A stretch of DNA of 62,633 bases, filler included, from Choristocarpus tenellus KU-1152 (lineage: Eukaryota; Protista; Phaeophyceae), in assembly GCA_964200185.2 (NCBI GenBank). It is 9 parts of 9 records of this genome, joined end to end, with 100 filler letters (N's around TTAATTAATTAA, not from the genome) between each part and the next. Parts side by side here need not be neighbours in the genome. Positions count along the whole stretch, not along the records: positions 1 to 14,484 come from CAXNAD020001176.1; 8 more parts are not named here. One strand, written 5' to 3'. Positions 1 through 14,317 of this stretch are shown here, piece by piece (position 1 is the stretch's first letter; each line of letters opens with the position of its first letter). A model generated the notes under the pieces. That model searched no databases. It was not told the DNA's origin and saw nothing but the letters and a program-made list of their open reading frames with translations. The translations under genes and the position numbers were made by a program.

Positions 1-1
1 G

Positions 2-262
2 GAAGCACCAGCAAGCCTGCCACCAGGCTCCGTCGGGGCTGGCGGCGTTCCAGGGGGCGTGCCTACGCCCGTGCCTGTTGAGAAGGCGAAGAGGGGAAGC
101 TTTTGGAAGAGTTACCAGGAGAGGAAGACCGAGGTTGAGGAGGAAACAATGAGGAAAAACGAGGTGTGGCAGAGGGTCATGATGAAGAAGCAGGAGGAGC
201 GGGAACGCCGGGAGGAGGAAGAGCGAGCAAGGGTTAGGGCCCAGGCCAAGGCCCGACACTGA
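2..262 (+). CDS. 3' end of an upstream gene (charged, coiled-coil-like C-terminus), partial
   Basis: Frame is open from base 2 to TGA at 260-262 (EAPASLPPG...EERERREEEERARVRAQAKARH*). GC-rich and coding-like; no family recognised. Confidence 0.4.
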   Translation, partial: EAPASLPPGSVGAGGVPGGVPTPVPVEKAKRGSFWKSYQERKTEVEEETMRKNEVWQRVMMKKQEERERREEEERARVRAQAKARH

Positions 263-1044
263 GGACACCTCGCCACTTTAGTCTGCTGTGAATGCGACTT
301 GACTTGAAGGGGACACTGGGAAAGCAGCCATGGTTTTTGGGCATACAGGCGAGGCTGAAGCAGGAGTGGGTTGGGGAGGAGGAGGGAGTTGTGCCAGGTC
401 TGGTTTGAGCCGAGTGGGTAAGGAGGGGGCAGTGTTCAGAAGGTCTAGAAAAAATTTGCGTTTTCTGGTAGATTGGGGAAGTTGAGCCATGAATGGTGTC
501 CTCGTTGGTGGCAGCGCTTGGTTTTTCCTCAAAAGCGGCAGGTTGAGTTTTAGTGTAAAGAGTTGTGGCAGTCTAATTTAGACTGGAGGAAGAGGATTGT
601 GGTGTCAAGGAAGACTGGCTTTCACTCAGCACATGTTAAGGGTTTGAGAGACTCCTTGGTTAAGGGATATGCATTGATTAAATGGTTAGGGGTGCTTAAC
701 CGTTCTCTTTACTAGTTTGGGTGCATCTTGGTGAACAAATGCAAGTGAGTGAAAACACCATACATTTCGTAGGGAACCCAATAAGCTAACCTGAAGTTGA
801 CTGTCTGGAATCCAGCGCAAGGTGAAGACCTACGGTAATTTTATCTATTGCAATCATCCATCACAATATGCCATCTCTGCCAGTGCAACATTGTTTTTAT
901 TTCCACTCACTTAACAAAAACCTATTTGCATGCCCAACTCACAAATGCCTGCAATGTGGTGGGTGAAGGGCAGGAACTACAATCCGAATTTCAAAGGCAC
1001 ATTTGCTCCATGCATTTCCCATCCTCTCACGAACACAACTGGAA

Positions 1045-2874
1045 TTAGTCGTCCTGTGAATAGTCACTTTCAAACATGGCCTTTTTAGTGTTGTGGACCT
1101 TCGATCCCTGCTTAGGAGGCCTGGGTTTTGTGGATTTCTCCTTAAGCTCCTCCGCCACAGCTGCCTGTTCTTCGTCTACTGATGCATCTCCATACGTGCT
1201 GCCAAAGAAGCTGAGACGCGTCGTATCTGGGGTGTCAGCAACCACTGTGCGTTTCACAGAGCTAGAAATTCTATGCCCAGTGTCATCTCCCAAGTCAGAA
1301 TCGAACATGGATCGAGTGTGGTGGATTGGGGCGACTTTTGACGCTCCGCCGCCACTTCCTCCACCTGGTTGCTGTTGTGCCAATCCACCCTCACTTGCCT
1401 TTCCCTTGAGAGCCTCAACCTCTGCCGCCGCCTTCACACTCAGCTGGTCTGCCTCCGGGTCTTTGCCATACACTGTAGCCCTGAATGCAAGACGGGTAGA
1501 GTCCGGGGTGTCAGCAGCTACTGTGCGCTTCACGGAGCTAGAGCCCCCATGTCCAGTGTCATCTCCCAAGTCAGAGTCAAACAAAGAGCGACTGTGATGG
1601 ATAGGGGCGGCAGTGGAAGTATTGCCATTTCCCTTTCCTGACTCAGGCTGTCCCAATCCTGTGTTCTCCGATTTTCTCTTGAGAGTCTCCACCTCTGCTA
1701 CACCCTCTGGACTCAGCTTGTCAGCCTCGGGGTCTTTGCCGTAGACAGTTGCCCTAAACGCCAGGCGGGTTTTGTCAGGGGTGTCAGCGAAGATTTCGCG
1801 CTTTACAGAGCTAGAGTCGGTGTGCCCAGTATCATCTCCCAAGTCAGAATCGAACAGAGATCGACTGTCATGGATGGGAGCAGGGCGACTTGTCGACGTT
1901 TGAATTATTCCCTCGGCCTTGCTCTTGAGGGCCTCAATAGCGGCAGCATCCTCCACTGACAATGGAGCTGTAACGTCCGGATCTTTTCCGTAGACTGTCG
2001 CTCTGAAAGCCAGCCGAGTAGAGTCCGGTGTGTCGGTGTAGACTTCGCGTTTGATCGAGTCAGTCGTCTTGTCGTCTTGCATTTGGGACATTCCGGAGTC
2101 GAACATTGATCTTTCATCATGGATTGGTGCCGCACAACTAACTGCAGTTTGCTTGCCTACTTTTCGTTTGAGTGCCTCAACCTCTTCTGCCTGGTCCAGG
2201 GTCAGTTGTGCTGCTTGAGGGTCCTTGCCATACACCGCGGACGCGAATGCTAACCGTGTTGCGTCTGGGGTATCGGAGGCGACGTTGCGCTTGATCGAGT
2301 CCGATGTCTTATCGTCATGGGACTGGGACATGCCCGAGTCGAATAGTGATCTCTGATCATGGATGGGGGCTGCTGTAGCGGGAGCCACAATATTCCCAAC
2401 CTTGCTTTGGAGGGCAGCAATCTCCTCTGCCTGGTCTGCTGTCAGCTCAACCGTGTCCGGGTCCTTGCCATACACCCCTGAGGAAAAGGCTAGCCTCGTA
2501 GCATTCGGGGTGTCAGCACTGACGTCGCGCTTGATCGAGTCAGCATGCTTACCATCCTCCGATTGCTGCGAGAGACTGGAGTCAAACAAGGATCGTCTGT
2601 CGTGGGTTTTCGAAGAAGGCCCTGCCCCCCTAACGGGCTCGTGCCCCACCTTTTTCTTGAGTGCCTCCGCTGCAGTGACCTGCGCTAAGGTTTGCTCTGC
2701 TGCATCGGGGTCTTTACCGTATACTGTAGAAGTGAAGGCCAATCGGGTGGCATCTGGGGTAGGGTCTTCGTCCCCTCGACCTGATCTTGACAGTAGGAGT
2801 CTGGAAGACAAACCGGGAACATTCACCTTGCGTGTCAGTGCACAGGTTACTGCCCGGAATCTGACCCTTATCAT
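1045..2874 (-). CDS. Intronless 609-aa protein of seven tandem ~80-92-aa repeats with an Arg-rich N-terminal presequence-like leader; function unknown
   Basis: 1.8-kb uninterrupted ORF. First ATG is at 2874 (the ORF-track start at 2916 is GTG). Repeat consensus DTPDxTRLAFxxxVYGKDP-(helix, EALKxK)-linker-PIHDxRSxFDSxxxDD..SxKR occurs 7 times, with motif residues conserved across diverged DNA. Confidence 0.85.
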   Translation of the reverse strand: MIRVRFRAVTCALTRKVNVPGLSSRLLLSRSGRGDEDPTPDATRLAFTSTVYGKDPDAAEQTLAQVTAAEALKKKVGHEPVRGAGPSSKTHDRRSLFDSSLSQQSEDGKHADSIKRDVSADTPNATRLAFSSGVYGKDPDTVELTADQAEEIAALQSKVGNIVAPATAAPIHDQRSLFDSGMSQSHDDKTSDSIKRNVASDTPDATRLAFASAVYGKDPQAAQLTLDQAEEVEALKRKVGKQTAVSCAAPIHDERSMFDSGMSQMQDDKTTDSIKREVYTDTPDSTRLAFRATVYGKDPDVTAPLSVEDAAAIEALKSKAEGIIQTSTSRPAPIHDSRSLFDSDLGDDTGHTDSSSVKREIFADTPDKTRLAFRATVYGKDPEADKLSPEGVAEVETLKRKSENTGLGQPESGKGNGNTSTAAPIHHSRSLFDSDLGDDTGHGGSSSVKRTVAADTPDSTRLAFRATVYGKDPEADQLSVKAAAEVEALKGKASEGGLAQQQPGGGSGGGASKVAPIHHTRSMFDSDLGDDTGHRISSSVKRTVVADTPDTTRLSFFGSTYGDASVDEEQAAVAEELKEKSTKPRPPKQGSKVHNTKKAMFESDYSQDD

Positions 2875-5800
2875 CGTGCCTACTATTTCCCTCTTCGTAG
2901 GCACCACAACATGCACTTAGGGGTGAACCGCTTTGTAGAACTCTGGTTCAAGGGCTTCACATCCAGGTTGATGTGCTAACTCGCGCATATCAACTTTGCG
3001 CGGAATCGAAGTATCTAATATGGTGAGTTATCGCAATAAAAATATTATAAAACTTTGTATGTATGAAGTTACCAATTATTGTACATACAAATTCCAATAT
3101 ATTAGTAGTAATACAGAGAAAATTGAAGAGGTTGAAACGCAGTCATCCACAACAATTATACTTACTGTTACTATGAGGGATCATTTGATCCCTAGTAGTT
3201 TCAAAGCTCAACACCATCTTCATGGCGAAAATTTTTTGAGGTGCATCGGCACGTAGCCAGAGCGCTTTTCCTGATCACCCCGCAACTCATTGTGTATTGT
3301 ATGTAGCGGGTGGTAAGAAGGGGCCTGACGGCTTGTTCCTAGGAGAGTAGGAGCAGTGAAGGCAAACCCGCAACAGATAGATCGTCTCAGTCAGTCGCTG
3401 CGCAAATGCTCCGAGAATATAACGATCTCTAGGCATGCCATTCAGTTTAAACGGAAGCCTCCAGGTCAGTTGCCTAGACAGGGCTTGATGACTGACTCGT
3501 CGTACCCTTCCCCTGGTTTAGACTGCCTTCATGTAGTGCCGCCCAAGAGCAGTCTCATCTACTATTATTATTGCTTCATCATTATCTTCATCCTACTATG
3601 TTTTTCGTCGATTTTTTGTTGTGTTCAAAGGACTTTCTTTCAACTGTTGTTGTTGGTTTGTTGTCCTCTTTTACCTATGACTCTTTTTTATACATGATGA
3701 CAGCATCTATCTTCTGGAAAATGTCAGTGGACTGGGGATAGTAAACATACTCCCGAGTCTTTGTTGGTTGTGGGTAATAAAAAATGATCATGATTTTAAT
3801 CAAGTATATATCGTAATATATCAAACGTTTCCAAGCATTGCCCAAAGAAAGGCTACAACTAACAGTAAGCATGGTAATGTCATCATTATCACCACCCTAT
3901 ACTACGTCATGTATACTACGAGCAGTTCCTATGTCAGATCCAACCACAACAGTAGTAGTAGTAGCAGAAAATACTTGCATACTTTCCTTAACAGTTTTTT
4001 GCATCATTTGACTGTGGATGGGGGTGGATTTAGTTGGGTAACATACCCTACACGTATGTTCCCAGTATATAACATGAATGAATAGTGACACAGGCAGAGG
4101 GATGGAAAAGAGAGGTCAGTTATCACAAGCCCAGTCAACCAGGTGCCAGCAGGGCACCTACCAGAGCAAGGCTGCAAGGCAAAAAAGAAAAACCATTGAA
4201 CGCACACAACAATCCAGTCTGCAGTACTAGAAGAAAGATGAAGAAGGGCCATCAATTCCAAGGGACCCTCATGACTACCTCCTAAATTTTGATGTAACGT
4301 TTGTGGGGTAGTACTCTAAAAAAAGGCAAATTCCTTTATCTGGACATACCTTTAATATCAACAAGCTCCCTATCATGGGGGTTACCTACCTGTATTTGGA
4401 CCATTGAGGAAGTAGTGTCCTGGCTCAACATTGTGTAAGTTCCATGATCATCAAAATGGGCAAAATTCACCCCAGAGTGGGGGTTCTTGGCTCAACCATA
4501 TGTTCATTAGGGTGACAGCATGACCTCACAGGTCATCCACACTACTAGTACCAGAACGAAATAGACATCAAAATGTTCAAACAGTCGGAGTGGTCATCAC
4601 TCAGGGCAACTGCACAGAAAATAGTTGATTCAAACAACTTCAGATCCACCTTCATACTCTCCAATGCTTTACATTCACCTGAAAAAAGGGTCTTGACTGC
4701 TCAATGATAAGAATTATAGTACTACTGTGTTTAGCTCTTAACCAACAAAACTGTTACAAGTTCTGAGGCACACGAGCCCAAAGGCAGAGCACTTGCGCAA
4801 ATACTACGTACCTCAGACGCTCACCTTAAGCATAAGCTCTTCATGCATCAAACCAATGTATCCATCTATTCACATTGCCAAAGATTCAAAATATTGCTGA
4901 GTGTCTGCATTTGATTATACTCTCCCCATGCTGGGGCATCATCCTGGAATAAGCTGAGAAACCAAGACAGGGTGAACTTTTCATTCCTGTACTTCTCATT
5001 TTAGGTCTCACTCACCAGGACCTTTTGGCATTGTGAATTCAACTCTTCCGTCTCTTTCAGAACACACCCTGAACACTACCACTCTTCCTGCAAAACAAAC
5101 AGGGCGCAGATAAATGCTAAAACATAAATTCAACAAGAAGCTATTTTTCCACAGAGTATGAATGCAGGATGCATTTATACCAGAGTAAGAGCGCCAAAAC
5201 TCTTGGCAGCATGTCAAAAAGTTTCCACCTTCCTCTTCATTCCCAAGTGCTGAGAAGATGACCCAGTTACGGGCTCATTCAAAAGGGAGGCCAGATGGGA
5301 GGTATGACAAGACGAGGAGGGGAACAAGCCATAACCACATTTATCTGTACACACCCTCCTCTTCCTATCCTTGCTGGAGGTACAAACGGTCTATCATATC
5401 CAACAGTCACAACGTGTCCGAAAAGCAACACGCCACTGTGTTGCAAAACCGACGGGGATGGGTGGGAGGCAAGAGGGGGGGGGGGGGGGCCAGGGGGGCC
5501 GGGCGGGGAAGGGCACGCTGTCCCCNNNNNNNNNNCCCAACCGGGCCGGAAAAGCAACCCCCCGGTTGGTGGAAAAACGGGGGGGGGGGGGGGGGAGCCA
5601 AGGGGGGGGGGGGGGGAACAGTGGGGCAGTGCTGGAACGTACCCGCTTCTCCCCTTGCATCCTCCCTCATGTCCTTACACATACCAGTCACCCTCTACCT
5701 CAGCTTCCCAAGCACCACCAATTAGGAGAGCTTTACACTTGTCAAGTACCAAAGTTATTTTTTGCGATAAATTCTGCGTACGTGAGAGAGTGTAACTCAA

Positions 5801-5996: not shown

Positions 5997-8900
5997 TTAC
6001 TGGGCTACACCCGTAGCAGAAGAGGATTTGACCTTAGACTTGGTGATCTTCTCATAAACCTCACGGAGCTTAAGGGCAACAAGGGTCTGGAAGAACCCAG
6101 ATCCGTTGTTGGATCCAGGGGAGTCAGAAAGCTTGAGGATGTTCTGGGTGAGCTCACCGTAGAACTTGGTGCCAATACTGGAAAGGTGGGACTCAACGTA
6201 GATCAGCTCCTGCGAACATCAAATAGAGGAGATCAAAGCATACTAGTTCAGGGATGAGATATAGGGAGGCAGACGAAAGGGATTGATTGCCTTCATGCCA
6301 CTACTGTCTACGCATCCACTCCGCGAAAGAATCACACAGGGAGAGCACATCTAACAATTCAGGGGTAAACAGGTATGATCCACGCACATATGGCAGTACT
6401 TACACAAACGCCTTGCACATAATCTTACATATCATAGACCTCATGAGTTCCCCATACGTTTCTGCAAGGATATATCAGCTATGTAGGGAAATGAACAGTG
6501 TCGTTTACCATCTGCACTAAAAACTGTAGAGGTACAAAACACTTTGTACATGATCTTGCTCATCTCTTCCAAACTCTTGATCCAGTTTCTCAAGAACTAA
6601 AACCAGATGTCGCAGAAAGGTATCTTGTTGCCATACATACACCAATGGCCATAGTTCGTTGCTGGTGACTAGAATAGAATTATGTCACTGTTCAAACAAC
6701 ACAAAAAGAGGTTCAAAATTGCAACAAAAAATAACTCAACATTCCAACAAATTCTAGAAGTAGGGCGTGTTTGGTTGGTTCACTTTTTATGCATGGCATG
6801 GTACAAGAAAATACTAACTCCAAACAAAAAGACAAAAATAGATTAGAAACTGGTCTGTGAAGAAACATTTTGATACAGAAAACACCTCCCTTCAAGTTGA
6901 AACTTCCTGAGAAAATATTTTAGTGGAAACTTGATGCAGGAAACATCCTGACTGCAAAAATCTACCTCACTAATCTTATTATTGGAAGATCATTAGAAAT
7001 TAGTACTTTCTTAATATACAGACAACATGACACTGAAACCTGTGACAAGCAAGCAGTTCAGATAAAGGGCTTTCATCACTACCCTCCTATATTTCTCATC
7101 TGAGGCAAAACAAGGTGCATTAATCAAGACCAAAAAAAAAGAAAAAAAACGGCAGCAAGTACCTTGAACTGAACTATAACCCGCTTTCACTCTCCCCCCA
7201 CACTCAGAAACGGAATCTGGATCCCCAACACCTACATACAATAATACTGCACAGAAACATCAACTCCTCACCTGCAGGTTGTCAAACTGGCCATCCATCT
7301 CGATCACTGAGACCTCATTGTCATAGTAGGTGTCTGGGCCGTAGGCGAACTTGATGCCAGGGAAGGAGCATGTAAGCTTGCGTCCACAAGGCACCCAAGT
7401 GATGGCAGAGCCCTCATCAAAGAGGTAGGCAGGCTCAAAGAAGTCAACACCCTCCTTCTGGATCAGACGTGTCCGGAGGATCTTGCCCTCCTTGTCGTCA
7501 GGGATGAGCTGGGTGGGGAGCACCTGGATCACAACATCGGCCTCACTCCGCTGGGGGGCAATGAAGGCATCGAAGTCTGGCTTGCGAGCCTGGTGAGCAT
7601 GTGAATGAAACAATGAGGTCATGGCGGGGGAAAAGTGCAGGTAACTTAAATTACTCCAAAAATTATTATGAACACCATGGCAACAAATAGTTTCACTCGA
7701 ATGGTGCTATTGACACAGTATAACATCCTTTCCCCCCCCGCCCCCTTGCCCAAGCTCAAGACCGTATCGCTTGTATCCAACAGTGACTCCAACCCATTCT
7801 TGGAGAAAGAAAAAACCTGTAATGCGAAAAAACTAATCTACTGATCGCCACCACCACCCGGTTGTTAAGAGGTTCACACAGCAATAGCCCAGTACCAGTA
7901 CCACAAGATGAACATAGGAAAGAGGATAAAATGAAAAGGACTGAACAGGTTAAGGTTCCTCACCTGGATGGAGGCCTGGATGGATTCAAGAGAGTGGCCA
8001 CGCTCCATCATGTCACGCTGAATCTTCCATGCAAACTTGATCTCATCAGAGATGTCAAGATAGATGGTGAAGTCCAGCAGGTCACGGACACGAGAGTCAA
8101 CGAAGGGGTGCAGCCCCTCGATGATTACAATCGGGGTGGCCTTGATCTCCTCTGGTTCATCCAGAGTGCCATTGACGTGGTTGTAGATAGGCTTGTAAAC
8201 AGTCTTTCCCTCCTTGAGGTCCCTAAGTTGCTCATACATGAGGTCGAACTTTTGCTCCTCAGTGTTAAGTGCTGTCCTCCCAGACACCTGTGGGGGTGTA
8301 GAGGGTTCAAAACATACAACTCTTCCCTCTGAATCCTTGTTCAAAACTGTTGGAGCTATTCATTATTTTCAAGCATTAACAATGGGAAAAAATCCTTGCC
8401 TCAAACTTATCACACAGCTCGGCCGTAAACATTAGCACACACAAGCCTTTTAACACTCTTCAGTGAAATGTATTTTTTTCTCCTTCAAGGAGACATTACG
8501 ACCTGCAAAGGAGAAAGTACAAATTCTTTTCAGAATGAAAAAACTACAAAATACTCCAACACGCATAGTCATAGACCCTGTTGTATGAAATCAGCAGAGT
8601 TTCAGAATGATAAATGAAATAATCTGAGAGATGATGTGTGAACTCTACCTTCAAAACTAATATCTGTCATGAACTCAGCAGGCACAATTTTTCTAATTTC
8701 ACCCCTCTTGAAGGTGTAGGAAGTGCAAGTAACGCCCTCAACTAAATCCCTGACAGCAAATCCTAACCATGAAGCCTGCAATTCAGCACGTGCTTTGCAG
8801 AAGTAACAAGAGTAAGGAAAGATGTCAACTTTCCCCATCACTGTGCTTTCCAGTCACTAGCAATATGAATGGTATTACCTTGCGTCCACCGCGGTCGTTC

Positions 8901-9688
8901 AGGTGGTAGTCATCAAGGCACAGCACAGTCGTCAGGTCTGACACCAGAGTGTTGGTTTCCCATCCCCCGTTATCGAATCCACCCCCGAGGGGTCCCACTG
9001 TGTCCCCTCCAAAGATGCTTGTAAGTCGGCGCATAAATGTCGACTTACCGCATCCGGAGTCCGCAGCTACACCAATGATAACTACCTGAGATACACATCG
9101 ACAAAGTGGTCATTATTCAGACACAGTTCTTATAAACAAGTTCAGGAGCAGACCCAGACAGTGGTCAAGCAACAGATATGGACGCATTTCAATGGCGAGG
9201 CTTCGATTTCCTATGGCACCAACATGAACAGACCATGTTACAGTGGAGGGTGGCAAATGCACACGCTGCTTCTCTGGACCAGATTGCTGGGCAGAGGTAA
9301 AGACTCTTGTCTCGGATTGACACTCGTTACTTATGAAGATAAACGCTCTTTTTTAGGCAATCCTTCAAATATTTGATCCTGAATCCATCACCCAGTCTGC
9401 AACGTCAGCATCCCCTCTCTACCAGCATTGCATTTCACAAACCTTCTCGTCCTCGCCCAGCTTCATGCTGAGAGCATCCAGGCGAGAAACAGTGGCCTTC
9501 GTCACCGATCCCGGGACCACTCGCGCGGTAGCCGAAGTAAAGGACGTCCGTGAGATACCCCATGGCTGTGCGTTTGAGGACGCATGTGAAGGGGGGGCTA
9601 CCACGAAGGCGGAGTTAGGCGCCTGTCCTGCCCAAGGGCTAGCGGTCGCCGCGCTTGCTAGCGCCACAAAAGCGCAGGTTTTAATCAT
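5997..9688 (-). CDS. PRK: Phosphoribulokinase, plastid-targeted, 435 aa; exons 9443-9688, 8879-9085, 7964-8287, 7272-7589, 5997-6209
   Basis: GT-AG joins give one continuous frame containing VIIGVAADSGCGKSTFMRR (P-loop), VLCLDDYH, KPIYNHVNG, EGLHP, WKIQRDMMERGH, ARKPDFDAFI, VPCGRKLTCSFPG and ELIYVESHL. N-terminus is a signal peptide plus Ser/Ala-rich transit peptide. Confidence 0.97.
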
Positions 9689-12383: not shown

Positions 12384-14317
12384 TCATGTTATCCCCGGCG
12401 ACACTTGAGAGGCACCAAGAACGGCCTTCCTCCAGCGTGCAACTAACTCAGTTGCCGTCGAGGCGACTTCTGGCGATGGAGCCTTGCGCATATGCCGGAC
12501 AGTGCGGCCAAGATTTGTAGACTGGAGGACCTGTACAGACAGTAGGTGGAGCCATGGCATGTAATGGGTTAGTACAACATAGTGTCACGTGTACATTAAA
12601 GACACTTTGGATGAAAAGGAACACACATGGGTCACTCAAAAGAAGTCTCCCAAAAAATGCTATCTATATTGAGGGGAGGGGGGAAATAAACGACTCAACA
12701 AAGCGGGAATTACACAGGTACAGTATCACGTATTAATAGTGGTCTTGATGTCTCGCCCTGGACCAATAACATGCCTTGGTCCCACAAACCTCTCCCTCCT
12801 TGAATCTCACTACATGATCTTGGCATCAATCTTGAGGGGTATGGTACCTCAAAGCACTACCACTAAGCACACACTGCGTTGATGCGGCAGTATCACAGGT
12901 GCATTTAACATACATACTCAATATTTTGCATCACATCCATGAGGGGACTATCCCGAACTGTGATCAGAGGCACTACACACTGCACTTCTCATACTAACTA
13001 CTGACTACTGACAGACATGACTACTGCATTCTAACCAACAATAATTGAATACTTGACCTCTGTCTTTCGACAATGTCAGACAGTAACATCACAACAGAAT
13101 GCATAGTGTCCCTCCATCCAACACACGGTCTTACCTCCAATGTAACATTGCAAGCACCCAGGTCATCCAGGTACCGCTCGACAACATCCCACCTGTACAA
13201 AGCAACAGCAATACATACACAAAAACAAACAATAGAGTAGATGAGTGTATTCTTGTAAGCTAAATCCTCACTGGCAGCAACTGGCTGCTGAATACATGTC
13301 AAGTTTATACCTTCGTATTGGACAGGAGTTCAAACACAACAGCACAAGGAAGAGGGCAACAGCAGTACTGCAGGGTTGGCAGTGAGGTCTGATAGGTGCC
13401 ACACAACAATAATCATAGGGCGATGCATTGCTCTTCCTTTCCGTTTTTCAAATCGCACATCAATACCAAGAAAGAACCCTTACAAGGGATGCAAACTGCT
13501 TGGAAATAAAAAGAAAGGGAGATTCAAGTCAAGGAGATACAATCACACAAAATCACAGCAGCCTGTCAACACTCCTTCATCAATCCCTCATTACCACACC
13601 AGTCGTACCATTCCCATGCTCTTCCTCACCTATTCCCTTCATAACAAACCAAGTAATAAAAGCGGTCACAAGTAATGGCACTGCAATTCCACAAACTGCA
13701 GAAAAGAGAGACCTACCAGCCAGACTCCACTGCTGCCTGCATGCCCTCAGTGATCTCTTTGGCCATCTCCACTGCTAACCCCCTCACCCCTCCGCCACCA
13801 AGCACCTTGACGGAGCCTCCAACCAAGCCGTCTCGACTCATCTCCAATGCCTCTCAAATCGCATCGCATGTGTCCACATCCAATGTTCAGGGTTACACAG
13901 GAATGCCTTAGCTAAAAAGGGGTCTGAACAAAAAAAAAAATAATGCTCCAACAACCAACCTTCAACTACATGACATCCGTATCCCCACAATGAGGGTAGA
14001 GAGGAAAGAGCACCTCACCTCAACTATATCTTAACTCTTGACCTCATGCCTTTCACACCCAAACAACAGCACAAAAGTACAGCGCAACACAACCACACTC
14101 CCATCCTTTAAAAAAAAAAGAAGGAAAATCTAGCCATTGGGCCACAGAACAGCTGGACCTTGCCCTGTGGCGCCCTCCCCGCTCACCTCCTTGGGGTTGT
14201 CCTCCTCACTAGAGGTTTGAGGGGGCTTTCTAGAGGTGGGAACAGAAACCCCCTCCTTACCACCTTCTTCTTTCCTGGACCCCTCCCTATGCACATCTCT
14301 CTGCTCAATCGTAAGCC
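12384..14317 (-). CDS. 3' part of a gene ending in a TFIIS N-terminal (TND/LW/Med26-type) domain; exons 14187-14317, 13717-13850, 13135-13192, 12384-12530; 5' part cut by the contig end
   Basis: Phase-consistent splicing gives WDVVERYLDDLGACNVTLE|VLQSTNLGRTVRHMRKAPSPEVASTATELVARWRKAV...*, matching the TFIIS-N consensus LxxLxxxxxTxExLxxTxxGxxVxxxRK...AxxLVxxWK. The two upstream exons are less certain. Confidence 0.75.

Follow-up and report, generated by a model that had tools for sequence, protein, structure and literature searches.

A tandem-repeat protein family with mitochondrial-type leaders in brown algae and allied classes is a candidate multivalent tether

Sticker-spacer linker proteins such as EPYC1, CsLinker and PYCO1 are disordered chains that combine repeated stickers with helices and spacers, PYCO1 having more than one sticker type (PMC13655443). 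A limited literature search returned, among its 15 best matches, no dedicated multivalent enzyme linker from the mitochondrial matrix, the described examples coming from plastids. Here we analyse a seven-repeat protein encoded in a window of 62,633 nucleotides (nine joined parts, filler included) from the brown alga Choristocarpus tenellus KU-1152. The family of this protein resembles these three pyrenoid Rubisco linkers in that the chain is predicted to be disordered and organelle-targeted, and in its build of 5-7 sticker repeats, short helices and spacers. Unlike the pyrenoid linkers, it shares no sequence similarity with them, carries a mitochondrial-type leader and a far longer module of fixed length, and is acidic overall. 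The stickers of PYCO1 (KWSP.., GTGYNP) were absent from 29 of 30 members, the remaining one matching a search whose loosest term was W-x-P, which agrees with the original prediction in claiming no homology to EPYC1 or PYCO1. Proteins of another kind, the mitochondrial ATPase inhibitor IF1 and plastid CP12, are also organelle-targeted, disordered until bound, and equipped with short conserved motifs and helices. In contrast to IF1 and CP12, the present family has no Pfam or PDB match, carries three to seven tandem copies and lacks conserved Cys pairs in the mature protein. We propose tentatively, with a probability of roughly 0.45, that it is a multivalent tether which folds on binding to an abundant oligomeric complex of the mitochondrial matrix or inner membrane.

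The repeat gene occupies 1045-2874 on the minus strand as an uninterrupted frame of 609 aa plus a stop codon, as first reported. This stretch is present in three public runs; coverage in X1 and X3 is even and DNA-like, and X2 has a depth of 650-1000 over 1-2873 and 4513-5400 and zero in between. From this pattern we infer that X2 is RNA, the kind of run being absent from its record. Contigs of X2 tile 748-2873 with no joint anywhere across the coding sequence, and the gene is therefore intronless and complete in Choristocarpus; from this RNA-like coverage the gene appears to be expressed, and no level is claimed since contig depth cannot rank genes. Positions 748-1044 (minus strand) are a probable 3′ UTR, continuous with the coding sequence in the X2 contigs, which carry no strand, and this UTR may extend beyond 748 into the convergent neighbour. 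At window position 777 one X2 contig departs from the genome, with at least 255 unmatched letters and no GT/AG, and is possibly a chimera. The convergent neighbour has its last exon at 1-262 (plus strand), with a charged C-terminus. This exon matches the gene lying downstream in locus L013 and, weakly, that in L005, and appears to belong to a NIF-domain (PF03031) gene, the 3′ end of which may overlap the 3′ UTR of the repeat gene. Further along the window, exon-like frames at about 12387-12584 and 13021-13302 (minus strand) have a translation that may resemble a TFIIS N-terminal/Med26-type domain.

An upstream exon is formally possible since the X2 contig ends at 2873, one base inside the ATG, with the 5′ UTR outside its coverage. 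However, the frame closes 15 codons upstream of the start with no in-frame Met between, orthologues have the same leader type and the same distance to the first motif A, and homologues begin at the equivalent Met. A short out-of-frame upstream ATG frame of 9 codons (2912-2883, minus strand) stops just before the start codon and matters only if the transcript begins further upstream. The NCBI model in GCA_964200185.2 (P0001), a partial model and the top protein match, begins at about 2769 and so misses the leader. Its intron (about 1357-1644) was rejected because the ends are not GT-AG, the frame is open and X2 contigs read straight through at either end. Both the intron and the missing N-terminus are prediction errors, and the public Choristocarpus gene model is corrected here by restoring the leader and removing the unsupported intron.

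After a 37-aa N-terminal segment the protein is composed of seven repeats of 83, 80, 80, 83, 91, 92 and 63 aa. Motif A (T-P-x2-T-R-x2-F-x4-Y-G-K-D) opens every repeat, its seven copies starting at aa 38, 121, 201, 281, 364, 455 and 547; motif B (H-x2-R-x-[ML]-F-D-S) is likewise present in seven copies, the last one 12 aa before the stop. The original description of seven repeats ending right after the last motif B therefore stands. Repeat 1 (aa 38-120; 2515-2763, this and the following all on the minus strand) consists of motif A, a helix, a spacer, motif B and a third element, IKRxV; it is followed by repeat 2 (aa 121-200; 2275-2514), repeat 3 (aa 201-280; 2035-2274), which is placed with repeat 2 in the tree of modules, and repeat 4 (aa 281-363; 1786-2034). 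Repeats 5 (aa 364-454; 1513-1785) and 6 (aa 455-546; 1237-1512) have long spacers, rich in G/S/N/P and in Gly, respectively. The terminal repeat 7 (aa 547-609; 1048-1236) contains a variant motif A (TRLSFFGSTYG) and a variant motif B, both kept at the same position in brown-algal orthologues.

The third element, S-x2-I-K-R-x-V, is near-invariant and lies between motif B and the next motif A. In 146 of 150 cores, B is separated from the next A by 27-28 aa; the stretch from A to B varies between 46 and 67 aa and is the sole variable spacer per repeat. The initial view of two motifs separated by variable spacers is thus revised by the presence of IKRxV and by the fixed B-to-A distance. Since this distance is fixed and IKRxV lies inside it, the conserved unit is a module of constant length (B, IKRxV, A; ~50 aa), followed by the helix and one variable G/A/S/P spacer. 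Such a module is as compatible with a single extended binding footprint in each repeat as with two independent stickers.

Pairwise identity between repeats is 40-70%, with repeats 4-6 at about 70% among themselves. In motif A (15 pairs), 148 codon differences are synonymous and 46 non-synonymous, the counts for motif B are 75 and 40, and TRF found no DNA tandem array at this locus. The motifs are under purifying selection, and the synonymous excess together with the absence of a TRF array indicates that the repeat is maintained at the protein level and is not a DNA repeat. Motifs A and B look alike (R-x2-F-x3/4-Y-G); in xanthophytes motif A has the form ..FDSDYG, and the final motif B of Vaucheria is an A/B hybrid (likeness seen in the window protein, P0025 and P0045). 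The two motifs may descend from one older motif.

AlphaFold models based on shallow alignments (30-36 sequences) gave a pTM of 0.27 for two repeats and 0.24 for the mature chain, with two short helices per repeat and no packing within or between repeats. Motif B and IKRxV have a pLDDT of 31-45, and the invariant R/F/Y/H/D/T/P positions sit in low-pLDDT segments or isolated helices. According to these models the protein would be disordered on its own, with short helices and no predicted fold, as anticipated in the original prediction (pTM 0.24-0.27, no packing, from shallow alignments). It could instead be that B-IKRxV-A is a small folded domain, or that B and A halves pair between chains to build a matrix filament or mesh. 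The fixed spacing and the invariant T-P and D-S positions would suit either arrangement, and an A left unpaired at the N-end could associate in trans with a B left unpaired at the C-end, but the lack of packing in both AlphaFold runs and the low hydrophobic content make this improbable.

The mature chain is hydrophilic (GRAVY -0.73, range -0.6 to -1.0) with a net charge of -22, has no transmembrane stretch and is nearly without Trp and Cys; its helices are moderately amphipathic. This composition and the repetitive build would also be expected of a mitochondrial LEA-like hydrophilin, which would shield membranes or enzymes from osmotic, cold or drying stress by means of inducible helices and without a specific partner. 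However, no LEA family was matched in Pfam, and among the ordered parts conservation is lowest in the helix, whereas the aromatic/Arg motifs are near-invariant in sequence and spacing between brown algae and xanthophytes. This contrast speaks for a specific surface; we consider the hydrophilin explanation quite unlikely. Conserved Arg, aromatic, His and Asp positions with conserved spacing in an unfolded chain are a signature of fold-on-binding, the behaviour assumed in the tether that we favour.

The N-terminus (aa 1-35; 2770-2874, minus strand) is a mitochondrial-type presequence as judged by composition and pattern. Its first acidic residue is at position 35, in agreement with the Arg-rich, acid-free leader of about 35 residues originally noted, and the first 30 aa include six Arg and one Lys. 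Many family leaders end in R-x-W/L/F-L↓S, in the form RAWL↓S in many orthologues and RLLL↓S at aa 25-29 of the window protein, which we read as an R-3-like cleavage site. In nearly all of 26 N-termini examined, the first 30 aa contain 2-6 Arg and no more than one acidic residue, so that the proposed mitochondrial-type leader recurs across the family. The leaders are rich in Arg from residue 2-3 onwards; this acid-poor type without a long hydrophobic core extends to distant members, and the Vaucheria leader is less typical with its first acidic residue at position 12. Mitochondrial presequences are basic, acid-free and amphipathic with an Arg near the cleavage site (PMC3097184), and the family leaders match this description. 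We therefore infer a mitochondrial location from leader composition rather than from a trained predictor or imaging.

Plastid import in heterokonts requires a signal peptide and an ASAFAP-like motif (PMC2567999). By composition, none of the family leaders contains a plastid signal peptide, and on this basis the family should not comprise pyrenoid linkers. The neighbouring phosphoribulokinase gene, PRK (5997-9688, minus strand; with introns, 435 aa, PF00485), does have a hydrophobic leader of the plastid signal-peptide type. The X2-covered stretch at 4513-5400 is probably a long 3′ UTR of PRK, crossing an N gap at about 5526-5535. PRK lies upstream and in tandem in Choristocarpus, and downstream and convergent in Ectocarpus and Pylaiella. 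This recurrent neighbour, and an architecture that recalls pyrenoid proteins, could point to a non-mitochondrial protein, either a plastid Rubisco/PRK linker or a cytosolic one. However, the leaders lack the signal-peptide pattern that the PRK leader has, PRK was absent from the fetched flanks, some of them short, of loci L003, L005 and L009-L013, and an AMP-binding gene (head-to-head) and a NIF-domain gene (convergent) are common to the loci at least as often as PRK. A plastid or cytosolic location is thus very improbable, and PRK linkage was set aside as a functional clue since, with other neighbours at least as frequent, it is ordinary microsynteny.

The AMP-binding gene, which also encodes a PP-binding domain (about 1100-1200 aa), is head-to-head with the repeat gene at a distance of about 0.7-1.1 kb in five brown-algal loci (L001 1-9052, L004 1-8868 and L011-L013), and the two possibly use a shared promoter. 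In Choristocarpus it is not head-to-head with the repeat gene. Loci outside the brown algae have no neighbours in common with the rest.

Of 25 proteins retrieved by a word search, the named ones are from Ectocarpus, Pylaiella, Laminaria, Hapterophycus, Phaeothamnion and Tribonema, and a cluster look-up added Nemacystus, Cladosiphon and Undaria. An HMM built from 28 single repeats and searched against 1.84 billion representatives gave 24 matches, adding Chrysoparadoxa, Vaucheria, xanthophyte-like sequences and two distant transcripts (P0042/P0053 and P0038/L007). The latter score 43 and 63 bits, compared with at most 9.4 for shuffles, and have recognisable B and A motifs and mitochondrial-type leaders. 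Because shuffling also failed to separate the artefact P0034 (72 bits), we assign them to the family by motif order and leader, not by score alone. P0034 and P0035 were excluded as the translation of an unrelated short-period repeat on one contig, having only MFDS-like words in common with the family. The 1.84 billion representatives contained no other real relative, and further word searches from distant members and metagenome scans added none. No match is named as a diatom, oomycete or non-stramenopile, and faster-evolving relatives elsewhere may escape detection. The named members come from brown algae, Xanthophyceae and allied classes (Phaeothamnion, Chrysoparadoxa).

Nothing significant was found in Pfam, NCBIfam, PDB sequences (with a single sequence and three profiles) or ESM Atlas features, and Foldseek shape searches of PDB and the Atlas gave no significant match. 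The best PDB match, mitoribosomal mL80 (7pkt_K, E 0.4-0.65), was treated as chance, and the labels Endosulfine, RRM_ESF1, MukE and bPH_6 were dismissed as weak scores summed over repeats. For Endosulfine/ARPP19 (PF04667), the summed score of the Phaeothamnion member is 32 bits (cut-off 29.8) and that of Chrysoparadoxa is weak, presumably because motif B resembles F-D-S-x-Y. No individual stretch reaches significance, none of the 30 members tested has an FDSGDY-type core, and the window protein has no Endosulfine match. The Ectocarpus siliculosus orthologue (CBN76690.1 / D8LBI1) is annotated as an 'expressed unknown protein', and we found no paper citing its accession. The original statement that no family could be recognised therefore holds in that the protein is undescribed and Pfam and PDB are empty, but relatives do exist in brown algae and allied groups, all of them unnamed. 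They constitute a real, undescribed, lineage-restricted family that is old and apparently single-copy.

Complete members have three to seven repeats and never one. They all end on motif B and start with either A or B, indicating that the halves can stand alone, and such terminal orphan halves, A or B, are conserved. The Ectocarpus orthologue has six repeats with the same leader type, motifs and terminal repeat. In Ectocarpales the last motif A is interrupted by a single intron. Each repeat of Tribonema is encoded by its own phase-0 exon, and in Chrysoparadoxa a cassette of three exons is repeated. A module tree of 58 modules and 53 columns, midpoint-rooted for drawing only, is weakly resolved; P0044 was left out as its motif B falls outside the search pattern. 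Modules cluster by lineage in Phaeothamnion (99/100), Chrysoparadoxa (99/96) and two xanthophytes (98/97), and Choristocarpus cores 4-6 form one group (100/99). This well-supported clustering means that several lineages separately rebuilt or homogenised the multi-copy state. The retention of three to seven copies, with no complete single-module relative found among the 1.84 billion representatives, suggests that valency matters.

The points that we count for a tether are the leader, the conserved motifs in an unfolded chain, the hydrophilic chain lacking a transmembrane stretch and a fold match, purifying selection, the copy number of three to seven and its repeated rebuilding or homogenisation, the one-repeat exons of Tribonema, the conserved orphan halves and the linker-like architecture. 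A nucleus-encoded protein would be imported into the mitochondrial matrix via its presequence as a chain that is disordered alone and carries several fold-on-binding modules of ~50 aa. Each module would dock on a single copy of an abundant oligomeric partner, located in the matrix or at the matrix side of the inner membrane, and the spacers would let one chain bridge neighbouring copies, thereby clustering or ordering them. Against this, the fixed B-to-A length could equally reflect a small folded domain or a stoichiometric regulator. In the latter case the protein would be a tandem regulator or accessory subunit, similar to IF1 or CP12, in which each module modulates one site of an enzyme or respiratory complex without forming a network, and the repeats would serve just to increase dose or avidity, or would be cut into units. 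A conserved footprint of fixed length, as seen here, is typical of extended accessory subunits and of inhibitory peptides, and the freely varying copy number would be compatible with such a role. However, neither the single sequence nor the profiles match a solved subunit or inhibitor, no Pfam family of this type was matched, single-module relatives are lacking among the representatives searched and no conserved cleavage site was seen in the spacers, which leaves a regulator somewhat unlikely. A narrower form of the tether, in which it would act as the linker of a matrix enzyme condensate or lattice in brown and yellow-green algae, seems unlikely.

As far as our searches reach, this conserved motif set and its family are limited to brown algae and their sister classes. 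One synthetic module of ~50 aa is a ready bait for the partner, and the Ectocarpus orthologue makes the question directly testable. If the linker reading is true, the family would give the pyrenoid principle a mitochondrial counterpart, in which an oligomeric matrix enzyme is concentrated or respiratory complexes are ordered on cristae.
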